Below are positions 16,077 through 36,819 of a stretch of DNA of 64,000 nt, one piece after another. Source of the stretch: Octopus bimaculoides (taxonomy: Eukaryota). Location of the stretch: the NCBI RefSeq assembly GCF_001194135.2, contig NC_068984.1, forward strand, positions 44,518,166-44,582,165, in the 5' to 3' direction. The notes under the pieces are model-generated. The model was not told the DNA's origin. It did no database searches and saw only the letters and a list, made by a program, of their open reading frames with translations. The translations under genes and the position numbers were made by a program. Within the stretch, counting starts at the first letter, position 1. The number at the start of each line of letters is the position of its first letter.

Positions 16077-16962
16077 CTGAAAAAGAAAATAGAAACCTTA
16101 ATTTTCAATCTTAATCATCTTAATATTTACAAACATAAAATACTTTAACAATTTCATTTACATGAGACAGATATCATTCTTTTATTCTTTAACTTGTTCC
16201 ATTTGACTGTGGCCATGTTGGGGCACCACCGTGAGAGGTTTACTTGGTCAGATCAACTCCAGTACTTATTTTTAAGACTGGTACAAAGCAATGTCTTTAT
16301 TAGCTTTGCATAATTAACAGTTATCCATTGACCAGCAGCGAAATGGAAGAAAATGGCTACAACTGGGTATTAAACTATGTCATGGACTGAACTAGCTGGG
16401 AGTTAATCTCTACTCTGCTGTGTTTGCAAACTATAAGAATAATAGGGACCACCATAAGATGGTCCCTGTTAGTACATGACTTCTTAAAAGAGGCCACATA
16501 GAATCTATCACTCTGAGCTAATAAAACATTTATCAATAATACAGTGACAACCTTACAATAAGGAGTAATGAAGTATAATAGCATCTATTTACAGCCAAAT
16601 TATTGTTGTTTATTCTCTGCTCAGCCTCCAGATTGAGCAGATGTATAATCAAAGGTATTGCAGCCATGACCATCACATCAGTTTTCCGTTTTTTTCTTTA
16701 AAACTACATTACCTAATATATCTTTGCTTCTTTAAGATCATAGGGTATGATTTGAACCAGGTGTCATTAGTATTTGTAGCATATGTGAACACAGAATGTT
16801 CCTCATTAGCTTGTTTACAGTTGGGTGAATTGAACAAGAAAAAGTGAAGTATATCAGCAAAATGAAGCAACTTTCTTTTCCAAGTAAAACATTAAATAGA
16901 ATTTTAAGAAATTTTTTCAAGAATTCCAATAAAATATAATGGAAAATTAAACTAAGACAAAC

Positions 16963-17174
16963 CTTTAACATGACAGATGCATTTTTTATATAAAATCCTA
17001 TGCACAGGACAGCAGGAGATGGTTTTTTTCGAGGTTTATTTAAGGAGTCTTCCTCCTCCTCTTCTTCTTCATAATCTTCTGGTAATATTTGAGGAACAAA
17101 AGACCATGCCCAAGATGCCCAACCTTGATCATCATATTCTGAAAAGGCAGATTCTTCCTGGCTTTCTGCCAAGA
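16963..17174 (-). CDS. VPS13B: VPS13B coding exon 2
   Basis: ...DQGWASWAWSFVPQ...VLCIGFYIKNASVMLK resembles VPS13B QGWVSWAWSFVP...SIGFY. Acceptor atatttag, donor AAG|GTTTGT; 212 nt, phases 1/0. Confidence 0.93.
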
Positions 17175-18833: not shown

Positions 18834-19288
18834 GCTTTCATAATACTGTACAACATTTCTACATTATATCATCATAGCTGTCAACATAATCTGCTAAATT
18901 TACAGATAAATGTCTCCAGCTATTATTACAGAAGAATTTGTCATATTTATGATAAATAGGTACTATAACAGCATCAAGTTATTAAGGAATATAGTATTTT
19001 CATTGTAGACAGGGCTGTTTGGGTAGCATGATGGATACAATCTACATCACCATGAGTTTAATTGGATCCACAATAAGTTAAGACCTCAGACGAGGGAAGT
19101 AACTCTACAAGCTTCATTTCTCCTGCAAGGTTGCAGGTGCCATGCACAATTCAGTGGTTAGTAGCAGGAAGAGCATCCTGCTAGAAAAACAATTGCTCCA
19201 ACAAAAATAATTTCAGTTATTCCAATATGGGACAACATTTCTACAAACAGCAAAGAGAAAAAAAAAAAATACAATAAAAACCACTTAC

Positions 19289-20213
19289 CGGCTGACTGCC
19301 GAAAAACTTCTTGCGAGTCAGGCTCCACATTACTGTCACTGTCTTCATTTGGTAATTGCAAGGTTCCATAGTAGAGTGCCAAACACAGCTCAATAAGCCG
19401 GACAACAAGGGGTAGCTGTAGGTCTGTCAGAGACACATCGAGTTTCTCACAAAGGATGTTCACTTTGGTAATTAATGGCAACTTAGAGTGAGGACTTTGG
19501 TAGGTCAGGTGCATACGACAACTGAGGGAACAACGGTACAGTAGTGGCTCCTGGTAAATTTCAATTCGACCACTGCTATCACATTTGTCTAAACAAACTG
19601 TCAAGTCACAAAAATTTATCACTTTTCGTAAAATCAGTTCGGCTGGAGTGACCTCAACGAATGCACGGTTCCAGCCAGGACTGACACTGTAGCACTCTGC
19701 AGACTTGACATTTACAGACAAAACAATGTCATCTTCAACAAACTTCAGTATGAGATTATTAACAATAATATTGACATTGTTGATGACTTTGTTGACAAGG
19801 CTCTGAAGGTACCCAGGTGGAAGCTCTTCCTCTACAGGTTGCTTCTTAGGTTTAATCTTTAAAGTCTGTGGTGTAGACCTGGTAGAGCTCTCTGATTTAG
19901 AACTTCTCTTGTCACTATCCCAAGTGCTATCTTTTAACCTGACAATACATTCAATGGTGTTGACAGTAATCACAACAGGTTCTGATCCAAGCCGTGTCCA
20001 TGGTACATGAAGATGAAGTTCATGGATGTGTCCACTTTTGAAGCTGATAGGTAAATTAATTGCTTGTTCAATGGCATCGAGCCGCAAATTAAGGTTGTTC
20101 AAAACAGCATCCCCACCCCAGAGGGATAGCTGGAAATCTTCAGGACGTAGTTTCACATACTTATCTACATATCCCATCAAGAGTGGGGCAATATAGGATT
20201 CAATCTTGAACAT
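19289..20213 (-). CDS. VPS13B: VPS13B coding exon 1 (chorein N domain); exon extends into 5' UTR to the acceptor at 20250
   Basis: MFKIESYIAPLLMGYVDKYVKLRPEDFQLSLWGGDAVL...GHIHELHLHVPWTRLGSEPVVITVNTIEC...LPPGYLQSL...NLILKFVEDDIVLSVN closely matches the VPS13B N-terminus as I know it. Acceptor tttttcag at 20251-20252; donor G|GTAAGT at 19288, phase 1; 925 nt coding. Confidence 0.97.
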
Positions 20214-26970: not shown

Positions 26971-29493
26971 GTAGGTGCAACAGTTTGTTTTTCCTTACGC
27001 GGAAAATTAATCATTAGCGCTAGGAACCTACTGATCTCTATAAGAACGACAGTTCTCGACTGCTCATGGTCTTTGGCATACGCCGCTGATCACAAGCAAC
27101 TCGTCTCCGGCAGCGATGTATTTGACAAGCCAGTCTCCGCTTTCACTATCAGACACCTGCGTACATCGTTGCTGTATGAAGATCACACAACCAACAGACC
27201 AACGGCTGCCTCTACACACCATCAAACAACAGTACGTCAATTATGTCTGCAGGATCAACAGTCGAACCTGACCACGAAGTCTCTCACATATCTTTGTTGT
27301 AACCTGTTATGTTAATTTATTTCATGTATGGCAATCATTTTATTTTATAATAAATCGTCGCTAACCAGTTCCTTTTCATCTCATGTCGCATATCCATTTT
27401 CACTTTTCCTCATTTACCCACCTTCGTTATTAATCTATATATACAACACACCCATTGACTGCTTTATCCGGTGGCCTATGATATTGTTATGATGGCCTTG
27501 CCTGAGTTCTGCTTACAGATGGCATGTGATGGCGCCGATAGATAAAATATCTATTCTATGATAAACTCATCGCACACACTGAGTGGGCATAATTTTTGAT
27601 CGTGAAGAATTTCCAAACAGCTGTTCCAGTAATTAAGTTATTCTCCTACAAGGTAAGGGGTTGACAGTGGCTATACTCCTGCCAAAACTATTCATCTTAC
27701 AAACGACTTGATTCATCTCGCTGTGCATACCGTCAAGTGATACTGCTTTACTATTGTAAGAAATGGAAACCTTATATAATCAGAGAGCATTATATTACTC
27801 GTAGCAATGCCTGACATTCGAAACCAGTCAGCTCAGTAATGAGCAAAGTTTCCAGAATTAGTGGCGACTGTTCTTACCAGGTAATATGATCCATATTTCA
27901 GACAATCGTTGATTTTGTGCATTTGTGTGGTGTCAAGATCAATGGAAAATTCCATGTAGTTTTGCGCCAATCATAGTTATAAATCGAGATGAGCGAAGAC
28001 TACAAGGCAGAGGATTCATAGAGGTTTTCTTGGTTAGCTGGTAACTATGCTGCTCTGACCTCGTGTTAAAAAGATTGTGACAGAAGCCTGTTCATAGTTT
28101 GGATCGTTACCTTTAGGTACCCATTTTGGCTCATCACGTGATGGTCCAGTCCTAGCTTTACGCGAGCTGTCCACCCCATCACGTAACAGATTAGTCAAGC
28201 GCGCCACCATCAGCTATACCAGGGGAGTCTTCCTGCAATCTTTTCAGTGAGGTGGGTTACTTCGTATCTTCGATATGGAGCAAGTTTTACTCCACTATGC
28301 ATTACGAGCGAGGAGAGCATTGTCAACAGAGATTTTTGTCGTCATGCTTTGTATTTTTCTGGCGCTGTTCAAGCTGCATGAGGAACCAATGTATTTTTAA
28401 CAGAATTATTCATGTGTACCAGTTTGTTGTATCTTCTATTACTGCTGTATCTTCTATTGTGGCAGTCAACTTTGCAACTTGTGTCTTCGTATTTTCTTTA
28501 TGCTCTTTATTATGACTCGTTTGAAATCAGATTATAATATTACCAGGGCCTTTGCCACATGCACCTTTTTCACCCCATTAAAAGATCACCTCTCGTTAAG
28601 CACGAACACATAATATTTCCACTTTTCGCCAAGCATGCACTCTCACGCACTAGCTACTTGCATTCAGCATAGTAGCTTTTTGTAAAGTAACAACTGTAAC
28701 AGCAGTCTGCAAATAAGCATGTTAATAAAATCTAAACATTGTGATTGGTTTTATTGGGAGTGGCACACAACCAAATGAAATAATCCAGCTCTTAGCTAAC
28801 TACTACCACAAACTGGTGACCCCGACAGCGAAAGTGAGTCGCTCAATCATATCACAAATTGATAACCGTGACGTAGACATTTACACAACAGTTGGTTCTC
28901 CTAACAACGCTGAGTCACAAAATCATTATGACAACCTAATCACAAGCTGTTAACATAGCAGACTGATTTATCACTGCACATCCACAAATTGGCAATCAGA
29001 CCGCTAAAATGGAGACTGACTTGACATTCAAGGAAAACAAATGAGTCATCATGGATAGGCTTTAGGAAGCTTTTGCGAACTCATTACCAGCTCAGTTTTC
29101 TTCGCCATGCACAACACCTGAACACGGCATATTTTCTCATAAAACTTCCATCTCTAAGAAAGATATAAGTTCCAAAAGCCGTCAGAGAGTACATTGGCCA
29201 GCCAAATATGCACTAATATTTTATATATATTCTTTTTCTCTTAATGTTAAACAAAAATTATATAGAAGAGAATTGTACGTAGTATCTTTTTTCTCTTTGT
29301 ATATGCTTAGCATTTCAGCAACAATTGTCATTCATGAACTCTCTGATTATGGACAATTCATTTTGTCTTCATTTTCAGTTGAATGTCATTTGCTTTTGTG
29401 TTTTGTATTTTAATTCCATGCCTTTTTTGCTTTGTTCCCAGGTTGCGTTTTAAAATTTAGGCTTCATTTACATACGCACGTACTTTTTCCTCT

Positions 29494-31361
29494 TATTTCT
29501 TTACTGTCCACTAGGGGCTACACACAGAGGGGACAAACAAGGACAGACAAACAGATTATATCGACCCCAGTGCGTAACTGGTACTTATTTAATCGACCCC
29601 GAAAGGATGAAAGGCAAAGTCGACCTCGGCGGAATTTGAACTCAGACTGTAACGGCAGACGAAATACTGATTTCTTTATTATCCATAACGGGCTATACAA
29701 AGAATTTTTTTAAGACATCACAAAACATAAAGACAGTACAAAACGCAAACATAAAATCGGGGTAATTAAAATAAAATGATAATATGCAAGAATGAAAAAA
29801 AATGAGGCGCAATGTCCACTCGATCCCCGAAGTCGGGTGGTTACATTTATCCAGTTTTTCACTTTTACGTTCAATGTCATGTAAACATTTTAACGGTTTT
29901 GTAACTCAAAAAATTGAAATACTCGCGTTATTTTTCTTCCATTTATCATTGTTACGTCCGTCTTTAACAACTGCAAATAATCAGTTCTAGTGGGTGGTGT
30001 CTCCACCAACCATACCTGTTTCGTTATTATATTTTCCCCAAGTTCTTTTATGTACTCCCAGTAGTTTTCCTCATGTATCAAAATGCATTTCAGCACATTT
30101 CTCAGGCATTTTCACACTTATTATTTCCTCCAACCTCTCGACTTTTCTGTCCATCTGCTCGCAATTCTCGTACTTTATCAAAACCCCCTTGTATTTCACA
30201 TCTTTATCCGTTCTCTCCTCCTCTTCTTGTACATTATTAGTTTCTGCCTTTTTTATCTCTTTTTTGTTTTTGTTTTCTGTTGACCGTTCCTTTGACTTAT
30301 TTTTCCTTCGCTTTTTAGGGCTAGTAGCTCCATTTTCGTTCTTCTTTGTTTTCTCTGTTTCACACTTCTGTCTCTCTTTTATTTCCTCAGTGTGGTCTAC
30401 AATGTTTTCCTCCTCTGCTTGTGCTTTCTCTTGCTGTGGCTGTTTGAACTCATAGGGGGCATTTGGTCTTCATATGACCTCTCTCCCCGCATATGTAGCA
30501 ATTTGGTTTCCTTCCCTCGACTACGACATTTAACGTTTTCTCGTCCTCCACTTCCATCTGGTAGGGAATTCCCTCTATGTCCTCGAATGTGGCAAAAAGC
30601 CACATTTCGAGTTCAAATCCCCACCATTTGCACACTTTTGCTCTCGCCACTGGTCCCAATTCCGGCTCCTCCTTCGTTGCAGCCAGCACTGTTGCAACCA
30701 ACCACTCTGGTTTAATATCTGGTGTAACTCTGGGAATTCGTATTTTTACACTTCTTCCTCCTCCGCAGCTTGGTAGCAATGCTATTTTCTCACTTCTTAA
30801 TATGTTGGTTACATGCTTGGTTGCCTCTTCTATAGTGGCGAACCTCACCTCAACCGTACCGAACCTTCTTCCTCTGTTGATGTACGTGGCCTCATTGACA
30901 ATTTCACCCAGGCACTCCTCGATTTCTTCTTCCGTCACCATTTCAATTTTACCGGTTTCGACAGCCTGTGTACGATACACTACTGTCCTCAGAATCTTAT
31001 TTTCTTAAGTCTCTTTTGGGGGACACAATTTGTACGAGTCTCCTTCAACTTCCATCAAATTCCTGCTTCTGGTCACCTCCTCCGTATCCAACTTGATTAA
31101 CCTGGTTTCCAGCGGCGCTGGCTTCCTCACCGCAGTGGCTCTGGCGCAGCTCTCCATACTGGAGACACTACCGCTTGCCATAGCTGGGAAAAATGCAGCA
31201 GCTCACGTGAAATGCAACCGCAACAATTCCACAAAAATCACAACTATTCACCGAGACAGCCTTCACAAAGTAACACAAGACTATTCACAATAATTCACAG
31301 AGCCGTTATACCGCGAAGCAGTTTGACCGGCGTGCTAACGTTTCTGCCAGCTCGCCGCCTT
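29494..31361 (-). mobile_element. tRNA-derived SINE (head 31308-31361, body and tail 29494-29667) interrupted by an inserted LINE-derived element
   Basis: Perfect 22-bp direct repeat ATACGCACGTACTTTTTCCTCT at 29472-29493 and 31362-31383. A-box-like GGCGAGCTGGCAGAA and B-box GTTCAAATTCC lie on opposite sides of the insert. An uninterrupted relative is at 1280-1470. Confidence 0.9.
29668..31307 (-). mobile_element. Non-autonomous L1/Tx1-like retroelement with ORF1 only; ORF1 pseudogene about 31181 to 29890
   Basis: ATG at 31181 is in frame with the 30450-30980 ORF across one TAA at 31007-31005. Contains RRM-like segments and the knuckle CYICGERGHMKTKC (CX2CX4HX4C, 30459-30500), then a frameshifted K/E-rich tail. 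No RT or endonuclease seen. The 3' end carries AATAAA. Confidence 0.75.
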
Positions 31362-31799
31362 ATACGCACGTACTTTTTCCTCTATCCCGTGTACGTTACT
31401 TTTCGTACACATTTTCCTGCACGCTTTACTCATGTTGACAGCATCTTTGTCCTGCTATTTTATTGTCAATTATTGTGGCACGTTTTAAAACCCACCAGCA
31501 ATTGTTTTATTATCTGCAGATTCCTTACTGCATGACACTTCATTCTGGGCCTGCATTCGAATCCTATGCATATTGAACACGGTGTCATTTCTTTGCCAGT
31601 TTTCAACCCACCATTATGCACGCCTGATACATTGTTCTTTTACCTTAAAATGGTTTTCGCTATCCATTTTTGGAATGAATATTTTTTTTTTTAAGCATTC
31701 AACTTTTCTGCACTTTTTAGTTTCAAACATGCATGCATTCTCCACATCACGTCGTCGTTAATAATAATAATAATAATAATAGTAATAATAATAATAGTC

Positions 31800-33640
31800 A
31801 AGACGAAGAACGCGATTCGTTTGACATAATGACAAACAAAAGCATTTGAATGTTTCCAGTAATCCCCTATGTCAGTACAAATCCGTTTTATCCTCAAAAA
31901 TTGTGATTCCGGATTTGACCGAATAAGATGATGTGGATGATCGGAGCGGCGGTGGAGATAAATGTGAGATGACGTGGGCTTGCAAAATAACTCTGTCACT
32001 ATTCTGCCTCCAGAAAACTTGACTTTTGTGTCCAAAAATTCAACGATAGCTATTGAAAAACTAGACATAAATTTTATGTTGGACTTAAAGCCATAGTTTC
32101 TAGCATAACTGTCACAGAAATGCAAGAAGTCCATTAAACTATCCTGTGATCCTTCCCAGACAAAAAATACGTCGTCAATGAACCGTAACCAGAGTATTGG
32201 TTCATGACCATGAAGGGATTTGAATGTCTTCAGTAACTGTGTCTTGAATTTCGTCATAAAGACATTAGCGAAATTAACTGCCGTGGGTGTACCCATGGCG
32301 CAACCCTTCGTTTGATGGTAAAATCTTTGCCTAAACTTCATTGTGTTACTTTCTAACACAAACCTCAGTAATCTATAGAGTAAATTTGATGGAATACTTT
32401 TGTTTGACCGCTTTTCGAAGGCATCCAGGCATGCTTCTACCCCTTCATTGTGGTCAATATTGGGATATAAGGAAGAAATATCCATGGTTACCAAAAAACA
32501 GTTCTCAATACGGCCTCGGCGCTTAAAAAAGTTGTTGATTTTAGATACAAAATTAAAGGAATCCCGAATATAGGAACTTGATCATTTTGCGACAGGGAGT
32601 AGAAAACAATCCAGCCATTCCGAAATTTTAGCCGTACAACATTCATATCCGCTGCAAATTGGGCGCATTGGAGGAAATCTTTCGAACTTTTTGTGTATTT
32701 AAGGGAGACCATAAAATACAGGTGTTCTTCTTTCTGACCTTAAAATCTTAGATTCNNNNNNNNNNTTGTGTATTTAAGGGAGACCATAAAATACAGGTGT
32801 TCTTCTTTCTGACCTTAAAATCTTAGATTCAGCCTTATTAACGAAATTGTTTTCCTCCATTTCCAGAATTATTTTGTCAAGTTCCTCTTTGTTATTGGAG
32901 TTTGGATCGACAGGTAATTCTTCATATGAAGTTTTGTCATTTAAAACTTCTTCACAAGCCGAAATATACTCACTTTTGTCCATAATTACGATAGCACCTC
33001 CCTTATCCGCCATTTTAATAACAATAAAATTGTTATTAGCTAGACGTCGGAGTGCGTAACGTTGGGAATTTGTGAGGTTATTCCAGGACTTCTTTCCACT
33101 TGTTTTAAGGCTTTCTCTAATGCCTGCCTGACAAGATTCAAGAAATTCCAGTAGTGCTTGTGAACGTCCATTCCGAACTTTATCTGGATACCAATTGAGA
33201 TTCTTTTCAATCCAATTATGCCAGATTCGATCATCACCATTTTTAGTAAACATAGGATTTTCTGACTCCTCCTTACCAGTTTTTTCAAAAAAATATTCTT
33301 TCAGCTTGTGGCGGCGGACAAACTGAAATAGCCCTTGAGCTAGTTTATTCTTGTCGAAATTCTTAGTGCTTGGGCAAAACCTCAGTCCAAGCTCTAAGAC
33401 TGAGACATCGTCGAGCGAAAGTTTTAGTTTAGATAAATTTATAACCGACTTATTCTCTAGTGTGATGGTTTTTCTCGGGCAAGCGGTTTTCAGAGTCTTT
33501 TTCTCATTAGATTCCTGGCTACTTTTTGGGCTTTGCTCGAAATCTTCACTTAAAACGCGGAACCTGTTATTTTGTAATAGAACGACCGTGCGAACCAAAG
33601 GAGAATAGCGACGAGACGGAAAAGGCTCCTTTTAACCATG
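31800..33640 (-). mobile_element. Penelope-like retroelement RT, decayed and 3'-truncated
   Basis: Motifs VINLS..LELGLRFCP, ADKGGAIVIMDK, YGLP*IHK..PMRPICS, DISSLYPNI, GCAMGT, RFIDD, FLD, SDHP and SQFLRIKRIC. In-frame stops are present. It ends at an (AAT)n tract with no GIY-YIG domain seen. Confidence 0.92.
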
Positions 33641-34720: not shown

Positions 34721-36819
34721 ATCAAAGGGTAGATATTTACAAGAAGTTTCTTAAGCAATTTTTGAATAATTGCAACAGAGCTTCTACAGATAACTTTCAA
34801 AGCTAATCAATAAAAATAAACAGCAATATATACATCATCTTATAGATACAGTCATTTGTTTTAAAGACAGCTATTTTATAATTGATTTCCTTTGGAAAGT
34901 CATGAAGACCCTGTATTTTGAGAGAGAAGTGAAAAGTTGTGAAGCACAGTAAATAGGTTTTGATCAAGAACCACAGTAAATTTGGGATTTCATTTCACCA
35001 GAAACATATATTATATTTTATGACATTCATGACAGAATAACGAATTATTGTTTAGTTAAGACTGTCCATGATATCAGTAGCTTACTTTTACATTTATTAG
35101 TTATGAATATTGAATGTTTATAGTCTAGGGAAAGTCACAGATGGTTCTGTCATTGATATAATACTGAGCAATAAACTCAGGGTATTGCAGCTTTTCCCAG
35201 TCACTAGTGTTACTTTGTATTCACAGCCAAGACAGCTGCGATCAGTCAAGTCCACCTGAGTCAAAGTAGACTATGTAGGTAGTACAATTTACTGTTGTTA
35301 GCTGCATAACATATCAATATCATGCTGAGTTAAGTTTGACATTTCCCTTCAAGGAAATTTATCTGACTGACCTGACTCTTATCCTGAGCAACATTTATTT
35401 TTCATCCATTTCATGTTATTGATTCTTCTGAGTTAGAAATAATTTTGTTTTATAATCTGACATAATTGGTTTCAAATTTGAAATTCATAAAGAAATCAAA
35501 CATTAGATGGGTAACAACTGTGAATAAATACCATTTTACACAGGTTAAAATGGGGTCTGCCACAGTCAAACTCAACACAATAATGCTCTAGATTGCAAAT
35601 AAGACAGAAAAAAGAAATCTCTCTAATAGGCAGGCCTACACACATAACCAAGCTGTATCTTCTTAGTCTTGGATGGTTTCTTATACTGACTTATCTTCTA
35701 AAATTACTGAACCTAAAACACATCACATAAACCTAATTGATACTTTTACCTTTTCTATTGTTTCTCCTACCACCTTATCCCTACTCCTGTCAGAACTCAT
35801 AATGAATGCTTTACCCAGTCCTTAATCGGGACTGCATTTTCTCTGGAATGCTAATCCCATCTGTTGTCTTTTCATTGTCTAATCTTTAATAATTTCATTA
35901 AGGCACTATCACAAAAATTATATTCTAGTTATTCCAATATACACCTGCCTAGAATAATCAAGAAATGCTATGAACACTGTTCTTCCTCTTTAGACCAAGA
36001 AACAAGAAAACCTCATCATATTTTCAGTCAGAGAAGTAGAAGCAATGACCATGATCTCTCCGTCTCTCTCTGCTGCCAGTCTAGTGAAATTAAAGTGAGT
36101 GATATTCATTTTTAACATGCTTAAGTTGATGTCTACTGGAAAAATAAGGAACAGGAGACAAAAATTAGTATTCCTTTCTTGTCAGGAAGGACTGGTAGTG
36201 TTTAACCCTTTAGCATTTAAATCAGCCATATCTAGCCCAAATATTCTCACTGTTTTATTTTCAAACCAGCCAGATCCAGCCTCTCACACCTACCCTACGA
36301 TGTCATTCTACAAACAATCACATCATCAACATCTCAAACCTACAAGATGATGCATATGAATAAGTAAGTAGTACATTTGAAAGAATAATCTGAATGAAAA
36401 AGGGTTAATGTAGGATTTTCTTTATTATTTGAGTTAGTAAGGGTAACTGGTACAGTAACCTACAGCATTTCTAGGATGCATGGTAAATTGGGCAAGTGTC
36501 TTCTACCATAGCCTGAGGCTGACCAAAGTCTTATGAATGGATTTGGTAGATGGAAACTGAAACTCATCGTATATCTATATATATATATAAAAACAAGGGA
36601 TGTCTGTGTGTAATACGTATGCATTTCTACAGTTTTCAACCAATTTTCACCAAACGTTACACACATATTACTTATGTGCCAAGGATGGTCATGCACTATA
36701 ATTTTTTGCCCAGAGCTCCTGTATAAGACAAGAAACGGGAAAATGTGTTTTACATGGGTTTTTCTCTAAAAACTGCAGTTTCAACCGATTCTCTCCCTTT
36801 TCTCATTGTTTCTCTTTAC

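Follow-up and report, generated by a model that had tools for sequence, protein, structure and literature searches.

A LINE derivative probably specific for one nucleotide of octopus SINEs

A LINE within a SINE

The stretch of DNA analyzed here, 64,000 nucleotides (nt) of the Octopus bimaculoides genome (assembly GCF_001194135.2, contig NC_068984.1, positions 44,518,166 to 44,582,165 of the forward strand; "the window" in what follows), holds a short interspersed element (SINE) that is cut in two by a long interspersed element (LINE) retaining only the first of its open reading frames (ORF1, without ORF2). Two further copies of this ORF1-only LINE, from elsewhere in the same genome, sit at the same nucleotide of other SINEs. 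We favor, at a probability of roughly 0.8, a reading of these structures as nested retrotransposons: a LINE family that is site-specific for one nucleotide in the head of SINEs of at least two subfamilies. The parts of the split copy, in window coordinates, are:

29472-29493, minus strand: outer target-site duplication beside the SINE 3' end (AGAGGAAAAAGTACGTGCGTAT on the minus strand), identical at 22/22 positions to 31362-31383 and the longest exact flanking repeat
29494-29669, minus strand: SINE 3' part (SINE positions 49-224), whose first bases are one copy of the inner duplication, CAGTAT (29664-29669)
29670-31307, minus strand: ORF1-only, ORF2-less derivative of an L1-superfamily LINE, 1,638 bp, present as a single copy in the window
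29670-29703, minus strand: tail with which the insert ends 3', TCTTTGTATAGCCCGTTATGGATAATAAAGAAAT; its homologues are the SINE tail and the 3' end of the ORF2-bearing LINE of O. sinensis and O. vulgaris
30450-30980, minus strand: ORF1 core, with an RRM-like motif, YINRGRRFGTVEVRF, and a CCHC zinc knuckle, CYICGERGHMKTKC (30459-30500)
31005-31181, minus strand: N-terminal piece of ORF1, MASGSVSSMES...PPKET, which ends at an in-frame TAA (31005-31007) through which relatives read
31308-31361, minus strand: SINE head (positions 1-54), terminating in the other copy of the inner duplication, CGGTAT (31308-31313)
31362-31383, minus strand: outer target-site duplication beside the SINE 5' end, 22/22 against 29472-29493

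The outer repeats (two copies of the direct repeat ATACGCACGTACTTTTTCCTCT) are just the perfect 22-bp target-site duplication that the initial annotation, made from the window's letters, had placed around the composite. Between them lies a SINE of 224 bp on the minus strand, interrupted after its position 54. The head (31361 down to 31308) ends in ...CTTCGCGGTAT (in a longer reading, ...GCTTCGCGGTAT). Beyond the insert the SINE restarts at 29667 with GTATTTCGTCTG...GAGTTCAAATTCC or, with the bases of the duplication read as well, (CA)GTATTTCGTCTGCC...GAGTTCAAATTCC...TAGCCCCTAGTGGACAGTAAAGAAATA, in which GAGTTCAAATTCC is B-box-like and ...TAGCCCCTAGTGGACAGTAAAGAAATA ends a long LINE-like tail. 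An uninterrupted copy at about 1414-1432 of the window reads GCTTAGCGGTATTTTGTCTG, and comparison with it bears out the description of a SINE split by an insert.

Blast finds the SINE 11 times in the window (both halves of the split copy included), at 70-82% identity; more copies were found at the loci of the two additional inserts, and the duplications that flank SINE copies measure 8-22 bp. The element is short, non-coding, multicopy and duplication-flanked and has a LINE-derived tail, as SINEs in general do. Assembly gaps account for 1,719 N in the window, often beside simple repeats (for example at 7.7-8.0, 49.6-50.2 and 61.9-62.8 kb), and similar gaps occur at the two other loci.

One junction at three loci

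The additional O. bimaculoides copies, at loci L003 (CM046603.1) and L006 (CM046624.1), were obtained through annotated proteins, and are respectively 91-92% and 84% identical to the window copy. At L003 the SINE head passes into the insert as ...GCTTCGTGGTAT/AACGGCTCTGTG (the slash marks the junction), and the insert passes back into the SINE as ...AAAGAAAT/CGGTATTTCGTCTG (longer reading, ...AATAAAGAAAT/CGGTATTTCGTCTGCC); the 3' junction at L006 is ...CAAAGAAAT/CGGTATTTCGTCCG (longer reading, ...AACAAAGAAAT/CGGTATTTCGTCCGTC). What these two 3' junctions have in common is ...AAAGAAAT/CGGTATTTCG. With the window copy counted in, the same nucleotide is used at all three 3' junctions and at both of the 5' junctions that can be read, the insert always being oriented like the SINE. 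Independent copies at one nucleotide and in one orientation distinguish a target-specific element; here they are found in three unlinked SINEs of two subfamilies, with unrelated outer flanks wherever these can be read (upstream of the L006 copy they fall in an assembly gap). The proposal of the initial annotation that this LINE family targets the SINE site stands for each copy that could be retrieved.

The duplication made on insertion had originally been given as 4 bp, GTAT. The duplication is there, but the three aligned junctions make it 6 bp, CGGTAT, read as CGGTAT and CAGTAT in the window and as TGGTAT and CGGTAT at L003 (one CpG-type change in each pair); it is on this account that the insert is bounded at 29670 and 31307. 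This target-site duplication, seen in two copies of the insert, and a 3' end in common with autonomous relatives are what one expects of a LINE.

What the insert is

Read on the minus strand, the insert starts with AACGGCTCTGTGAATT and finishes ...TAGCCCGTTATGGATAATAAAGAAAT (its exact terminal sequence being ...AATAAAGAAAT); it consists of a 126-nt 5' untranslated region (UTR; 31182-31307), a decayed ORF1 of ~470 codons and a 3' UTR of ~230-250 nt (about 29670-29899). The reading of the ORF1 core, ...YINRGRRFGTVEVRF...VVVEGRKPNCYICGERGHMKTKCP, is broken where 2 bp present in the L003 copy have been deleted, past which ORF1 continues in other frames: a K/E-rich stretch, then a C-terminal part, ...ETPPTRTDYLQLLKTDVTMINGRK, down to ~29900. 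The CCHC knuckle is the only part of ORF1 that Pfam recognizes (zf-CCHC, E=7e-5); the RRM-like motif was placed by alignment with LINE ORF1s, with which the segments IEECL, YINRGRRFGTVEVRF and VEGRKPxCxxCGxxGH are conserved. (An AlphaFold2 model of a 176-amino-acid ORF, built from 7 sequences, had a mean pLDDT of 40 and was unusable.) The sequence before the ORF1 ATG (31182-31195, minus strand), TTTTTCCCAG/CT ATG, resembles a splice acceptor. Several public gene models (P0002, P0003, P0008) join ORF1 to unrelated exons; these fusions are probably artefacts of annotation.

The closest relatives of this ORF1 are six gag-only proteins of O. bimaculoides (58-88% identity). It is also 35-39% identical to P0006 and P0007 (O. 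sinensis, O. vulgaris), whose genes, at loci L001 and L002, sit directly upstream of a 1,133-amino-acid ORF2 (after a gap of 36 bp in L001). Exo_endo_phos, RVT_1 and zf-RVT domains are recognized in this ORF2, whose best relative of solved structure is human L1 ORF2p (E=3e-68); the arrangement of ORF1 and ORF2 recurs in a third LINE, L005. The insert is taken to be an ORF1-only derivative of an L1-superfamily LINE because its ORF1 is homologous to ORF1s that precede such an ORF2; sequence comparison places it at the level of the superfamily, with nothing below that (Tx1, for example) assigned.

At 1,638 bp the insert is too short to hold an ORF2, and no ORF2-like sequence was detected in the window, L003 or L006-L009 (by tblastn with the L001 ORF2 in the case of the window, L003 and L006). 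Its original description as a gag-only LINE derivative is borne out on both counts: homology of ORF1 and lack of ORF2-like sequence. The copies in the window, L003 and L006 are co-linear, each of ~1.6 kb and each ORF2-less, and ORF1 shows some constraint (a ratio of nonsynonymous to synonymous differences per site, pN/pS, of 0.53). Several ORF2-less copies and some purifying selection on ORF1 are also what characterizes the ORF1-only "half LINE" (HAL1-like) type. More diverged ORF1-only relatives, ~1.5-1.8 kb long and without ORF2, are present on Logan contigs L007, L008 and L009-L011 (runs SRR11869384-394).

Three insertions or one?

Do three identical junctions record three insertions, or one insertion copied afterwards? 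A single chance insertion of the LINE could have created a SINE-LINE-SINE composite that was then copied as a unit by read-through retrotransposition, its junction being merely inherited. The window and L003 composites are indeed co-linear, with homology extending from SINE position 1 to the last SINE base between unrelated outer flanks; the same derived C is present close to the junction in both hosts; and crocodilian Tx1 LINEs with target-derived 5' ends (cited in PMC4758252) offer a partial precedent. Divergence between these two composites (11.4% for the SINE flanks and 6.3% for the insert; Fisher p=0.012) does not discriminate a unit from independent events: synonymous divergence of the insert, at 10.7%, is about that of the flanks.

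Four lines of evidence speak against copying. First, the SINE that the L006 copy interrupts, at the identical nucleotide, belongs to another subfamily, with a short tail (it has GTCTTTACG and the tail CTAGCCCCCTCCGCCAAATTTCAGGCTTTGTGCC, and lacks a 19-nt block of the long tail), and therefore cannot descend from the long-tail composite. Second, the three long-tail SINEs diverge in a star-like manner, and the two split ones are no closer to each other than to the intact one, with 25/216 differences between the window and L003 hosts and 22/224 and 20/225 between each of these and an intact copy. Third, the 3' UTR of the insert is strongly conserved between the window and L003 (7/227 sites differ), while the SINE downstream of it (17/162), tail included (7/34), is not; it is on this ground that the insert's own end is considered the functional 3' end. 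Fourth, the sense strand of the composite has 12 runs of at least four T, and the putative promoter boxes of the SINE would stand 1.6 kb apart in it, so that RNA polymerase III (Pol III) would be unable to transcribe the whole. It is for these reasons that the comparison of copies points to three independent site-specific insertions at one SINE nucleotide. Both readable composites, moreover, start exactly at SINE position 1 and have no leader in common. We regard copying of a composite as improbable.

Spread of a single insertion to other SINEs by ectopic gene conversion, on the strength of SINE homology, appears somewhat less probable still. It would explain why the window and L003 agree better in SINE sequence close to the junction than in distal SINE sequence, and why the derived C lies only 8 nt from the junction. 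The junction-proximal region is equally conserved in intact SINEs, however, and calls for no special conversion tract; the left homology arm would be merely 54 bp; bases specific to the L006 subfamily start 12 nt from the junction; and the three inserts differ from one another by 6-16%, as separate retrotranspositions from diverging sources should. That there is no real sequence specificity, and that a broad preference placed three copies at one position by coincidence or sampling bias, is judged very unlikely: small as the sample is, and although sister ORF1-only families are found with other flanks (L009) or a shifted junction (L008), the chance that one extra random insertion falls at the same nucleotide and in the same orientation of a ~220-bp SINE is ~2e-4, and for two extra insertions ~5e-8 (our own arithmetic, taking SINEs as 4-12% of octopus genomes; PMC12988792, PMC13282606).

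Several observations nevertheless weigh against site-specific insertion. The sample is three copies, reached through annotated proteins and not through an unbiased census, and one 5' junction, that at L006, is hidden by a gap in the assembly. Neither at L001 nor at L002 does the ORF2-bearing relative lie within a SINE; one sister ORF1-only family (L009-L011) has a 3' flank that is not SINE, and another (L008) joins a SINE ~10 nt further upstream, at about position 39. In O. bimaculoides, no element was found that combines this tail with ORF1 and ORF2 and could be the autonomous partner. The near equality of flank and synonymous divergence makes the window/L003 pair, taken alone, compatible with a composite copied as a unit. 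The C that both of these hosts carry 8 nt upstream of the junction (GCTTCGCGG), where the 9 other aligned SINE copies that cover the position have A (GCTTAGCGG or similar), could come from shared ancestry or co-conversion and have nothing to do with target preference; it could equally belong to the sequence that is recognized, mark a subfamily or be a short tract derived from the donor. A simple picture of one machinery serving LINE and SINE is at odds with these ORF2-bearing relatives and sister families, and also with the places in which long-tail SINEs are found: in the window the site is unique sequence rich in purines, and in L003 it is, in two cases, position 17 of a SINE.

A tail held in common

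The insert has no poly(A); it ends in a specific tail with AATAAA within the last 12 nt. Its last 26 nt (29670-29695) match the last 26 nt of the host SINE (29495-29520) at 21/26 positions, or 27/34 when extended, and nothing else among the 127,950 26-mers of the window (both strands) reaches 18/26. The 21/26 match on which the initial annotation had built is thus real and is equaled by no other 26-mer of the window, and an alignment of several families places it in a wider setting: a tail motif occupying the last 35-45 nt, TCT.TGT.TAGCCC.TT.TGG..A..AAAGAAAT, is common to the ORF2-bearing LINE of O. sinensis and O. vulgaris (...TTGTATTGTCCCCTCTTTGTTGGCCCCTTGTGGGTAATAATAAAACAG), to ORF1-only elements and to both SINE tail subfamilies, confirming a LINE-type 3' tail in insert and SINE alike. 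(At L009 the tail, GGGCCACTTGTGGGCATTAACGAAATA, is similar to the long tail of the SINEs, but the flank is not SINE.) Other SINE copies in the window had been said to carry a different tail; their tails do differ, but as homologous variants of this same tail and not as something unrelated. SINE and LINE tails look alike because, as these alignments suggest, octopus SINE tails were taken from the LINE clade to which the insert belongs. The papers searched contain no description of octopus SINE tails paired with this LINE clade.

Does the inserted LINE also mobilize the SINE that it interrupts, as had been supposed? The evidence does not support this: the insert has neither reverse transcriptase nor endonuclease; the long-tail SINE is closer in its tail to the ORF2-bearing LINE of O. 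sinensis (31/35) than to the insert (27/34); and none of the three long-tail SINE copies has itself landed at the CGGTAT site.

The SINE head and its promoter

The SINE head had been called tRNA-derived, and the insert placed between the A and B boxes of its Pol III promoter. A tRNA origin of the head found no support: ARAGORN detects no tRNA in the window, and Rfam yields no tRNA match at E<=1 for four SINE copies. The boxes themselves are weak matches: the B-box-like GTTCAAATT, at SINE position 77, departs from GTTCNANNC at 1 base, and candidates for the A box have 3 mismatches at best. A position inside the SINE's Pol III promoter is plausible, the insert may have an effect on SINE transcription, and the further suggestion that insertion disables competing Pol III templates is speculation.

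A proposed sequence of events

On the site-specific reading, the 224-bp long-tail SINE would have inserted first, by target-primed reverse transcription and with a 22-bp duplication. Later the 1,638-bp non-autonomous LINE, in which a 5' UTR, the gag-like ORF1 (RRM-like motif and CCHC knuckle) and a 3' UTR are all that is retained, would have entered this SINE between its positions 48 and 54, pointing the same way and duplicating CGGTAT. Since the insert encodes no endonuclease or reverse transcriptase, it must have been mobilized in trans, presumably by an autonomous relative whose ORF2 protein recognizes the conserved 3' UTR and tail; the APE-type (apurinic/apyrimidinic) endonuclease of that ORF2 protein would provide target specificity, as in target-specific L1/Tx1-type LINEs. 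The nicks expected in the SINE lie around GCTTAGCGGTATTTCGTCTG: G/CGGTAT on the bottom strand, and after GTAT/T on the top strand.

How can an element without an endonuclease of its own be targeted? Its autonomous partner may be SINE-specific or, and this would be the more novel answer, the ORF1 protein with its RRM-like motif and knuckle may aid target choice; we offer this as a tentative suggestion, with the odds against it. HeT-A Gag helps to choose the target at telomeres; for an L1-type element, assistance by the ORF1 protein would be new. A SINE-specific partner, for its part, would mean that a LINE clade parasitizes the very retroposons that bear its tail, putting their internal promoter out of action. 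Two ORF2 relatives, P0009 and P0013, were followed as leads and dropped: they come from other organisms, or from a contig that ends short of the 3' end. A search with the reverse transcriptase ORF that neighbors the composite returned no O. bimaculoides loci, and a conserved 27-mer from the insert had no match in a scan of metagenomes.

Junctions between SINEs, tandem arrays and the neighborhood

Insertion of the SINE into itself at the target site, another proposal of the initial annotation, is not borne out: the SINE-SINE junction ...AAAGAAAT-CGGTATTTCG does not occur among 30-odd SINE copies and fragments. Two SINE fragments, each beside one of the LINE-bearing SINEs (L003 9459-9513, L006 11024-11135), are a head that ends at about position 55-62 and a body that starts at about position 43-53; they may be further breaks near the target site, and were not counted as SINE-into-SINE events, their breakpoints being uncertain by several nt. 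At two places in L003 (11113/11114 and, on the minus strand, 36124/36123) a long-tail SINE directly abuts a SINE that begins at position 17, AAAGAAATA/AGAAACGTTAGCACG: either a dimeric SINE or a preferred site for SINE-into-SINE insertion at which the target resembles the tail. Four head-to-tail SINEs of two tail subfamilies are packed into 800 bp of the same locus (35984-36786, minus strand) with spacers of 0-13 nt.

In O. sinensis and O. vulgaris, the LINE that has both ORF1 and ORF2 also forms head-to-tail arrays (L001 4509-21353, L002 4515-19184). Tail-directed self-insertion was considered for these and rejected: the L001 units, of 3,573 bp, have one internal ORF2 deletion in common, and every L002 unit, of ~5,280 bp, takes in ~66 bp of flank, so that the arrays are best ascribed to tandem amplification at the level of DNA. 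L001 also contains, at 180-470, inverted (TTAGGG)n-like telomeric blocks around a short unique core, next to a fragment of a long-tail-like SINE.

The composite lies ~9-11 kb upstream of, and on the same strand as, a VPS13-like N-terminal region, which comprises an open exon of 351 amino acids at 19158-20213 (minus strand; Pfam VPS13_N, E=3e-60) and a second segment at 16738-17172 (minus strand). On its other side, ~300 bp past the right-hand duplication, a second retroelement begins (31691-33598, minus strand), with adjacent ORFs of 267 and 274 amino acids, the first with an RVT_1 match; relatives of these ORFs were found only on ENA contigs and in one O. sinensis protein.

Comparison with known systems

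Most known target-specific LINEs aim at host multicopy genes or at DNA transposons, and such LINEs are natural models for programmable "safe-harbor" retrotransposition. ORF1-only non-LTR elements are known as well: HAL1 (half-L1) of mammals and HeT-A of Drosophila have an ORF1 or gag gene alone, obtain reverse transcriptase in trans and keep ORF1 under some selection. The octopus element resembles both in retaining ORF1/gag alone under some selection, and differs from both in ending in a specific tail that is not poly(A). HAL1 is, to our knowledge, not site-specific, as the octopus family appears to be; HeT-A targets chromosome ends, whereas the octopus target is internal. A family that encodes ORF1 only would provide a simple system for locating the source of specificity.

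Nucleotide-precise insertion with a short, constant duplication, into a conserved multicopy target sequence of small-RNA type, likens the octopus family to Keno, Mutsu and Dewa of the Tx1 clade (U2 small nuclear RNA, 5S rRNA and a tRNA-Leu spacer; PMC3706591, PMC4494074) and to R1/R2 (28S rDNA); its target, unlike theirs, is a dispersed retroposon and not a host gene array. Targets of Tx1-clade LINEs as a group include microsatellites, other transposons, a tRNA spacer and the genes for small nuclear RNA and 5S rRNA (PMC4494074, PMC3706591). In O. vulgaris, where SINEs and LINEs each exceed 10% of the genome and have been linked to genome reshuffling, there are active L1-Tx1 families (PMC13282606). 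Neither a LINE aimed at SINEs nor an ORF1-only site-specific lineage appears in the papers searched, which deal with the abundance and activity of SINEs and LINEs in octopus and with target-specific Tx1 LINEs in other animals.

The sharing of a tail is nothing unusual in kind: as in the classical LINE-SINE pairs of Ohshima and Okada and of Kajikawa and Okada (2002; cited in PMC4494074), the last 35-45 nt of the octopus SINE are homologous to the 3' end of a LINE clade, here one of the L1 superfamily. The closest parallels are Tx1L, which inserts in Tx1D of Xenopus, and crocodilian Tx1-Mar and SINEU-3, which insert in Mariner-N4_AMi (Kojima 2015, PMC4494074): L1/Tx1-type elements with an APE-type endonuclease that use one position of a multicopy transposable element and, in the case of Tx1-Mar and SINEU-3, a LINE and a SINE with a 3' tail in common. 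The octopus copies seen so far differ from Tx1L and Tx1-Mar in lacking ORF2 and in being placed only at the level of the L1 superfamily, and their target is not a DNA transposon but a SINE with the tail of the same LINE clade; unlike SINEU-3, the octopus SINE copies do not follow the target preference of the LINE. By analogy with these systems, one can think of the octopus family as extending known target-specific behavior of LINEs to a SINE target. A lineage of this sort would add one more interaction of transposon upon transposon to a genome rich in SINEs and LINEs, and its possible significance lies in the combination of a host SINE that bears the tail of the invading clade with a point of entry between putative promoter boxes.

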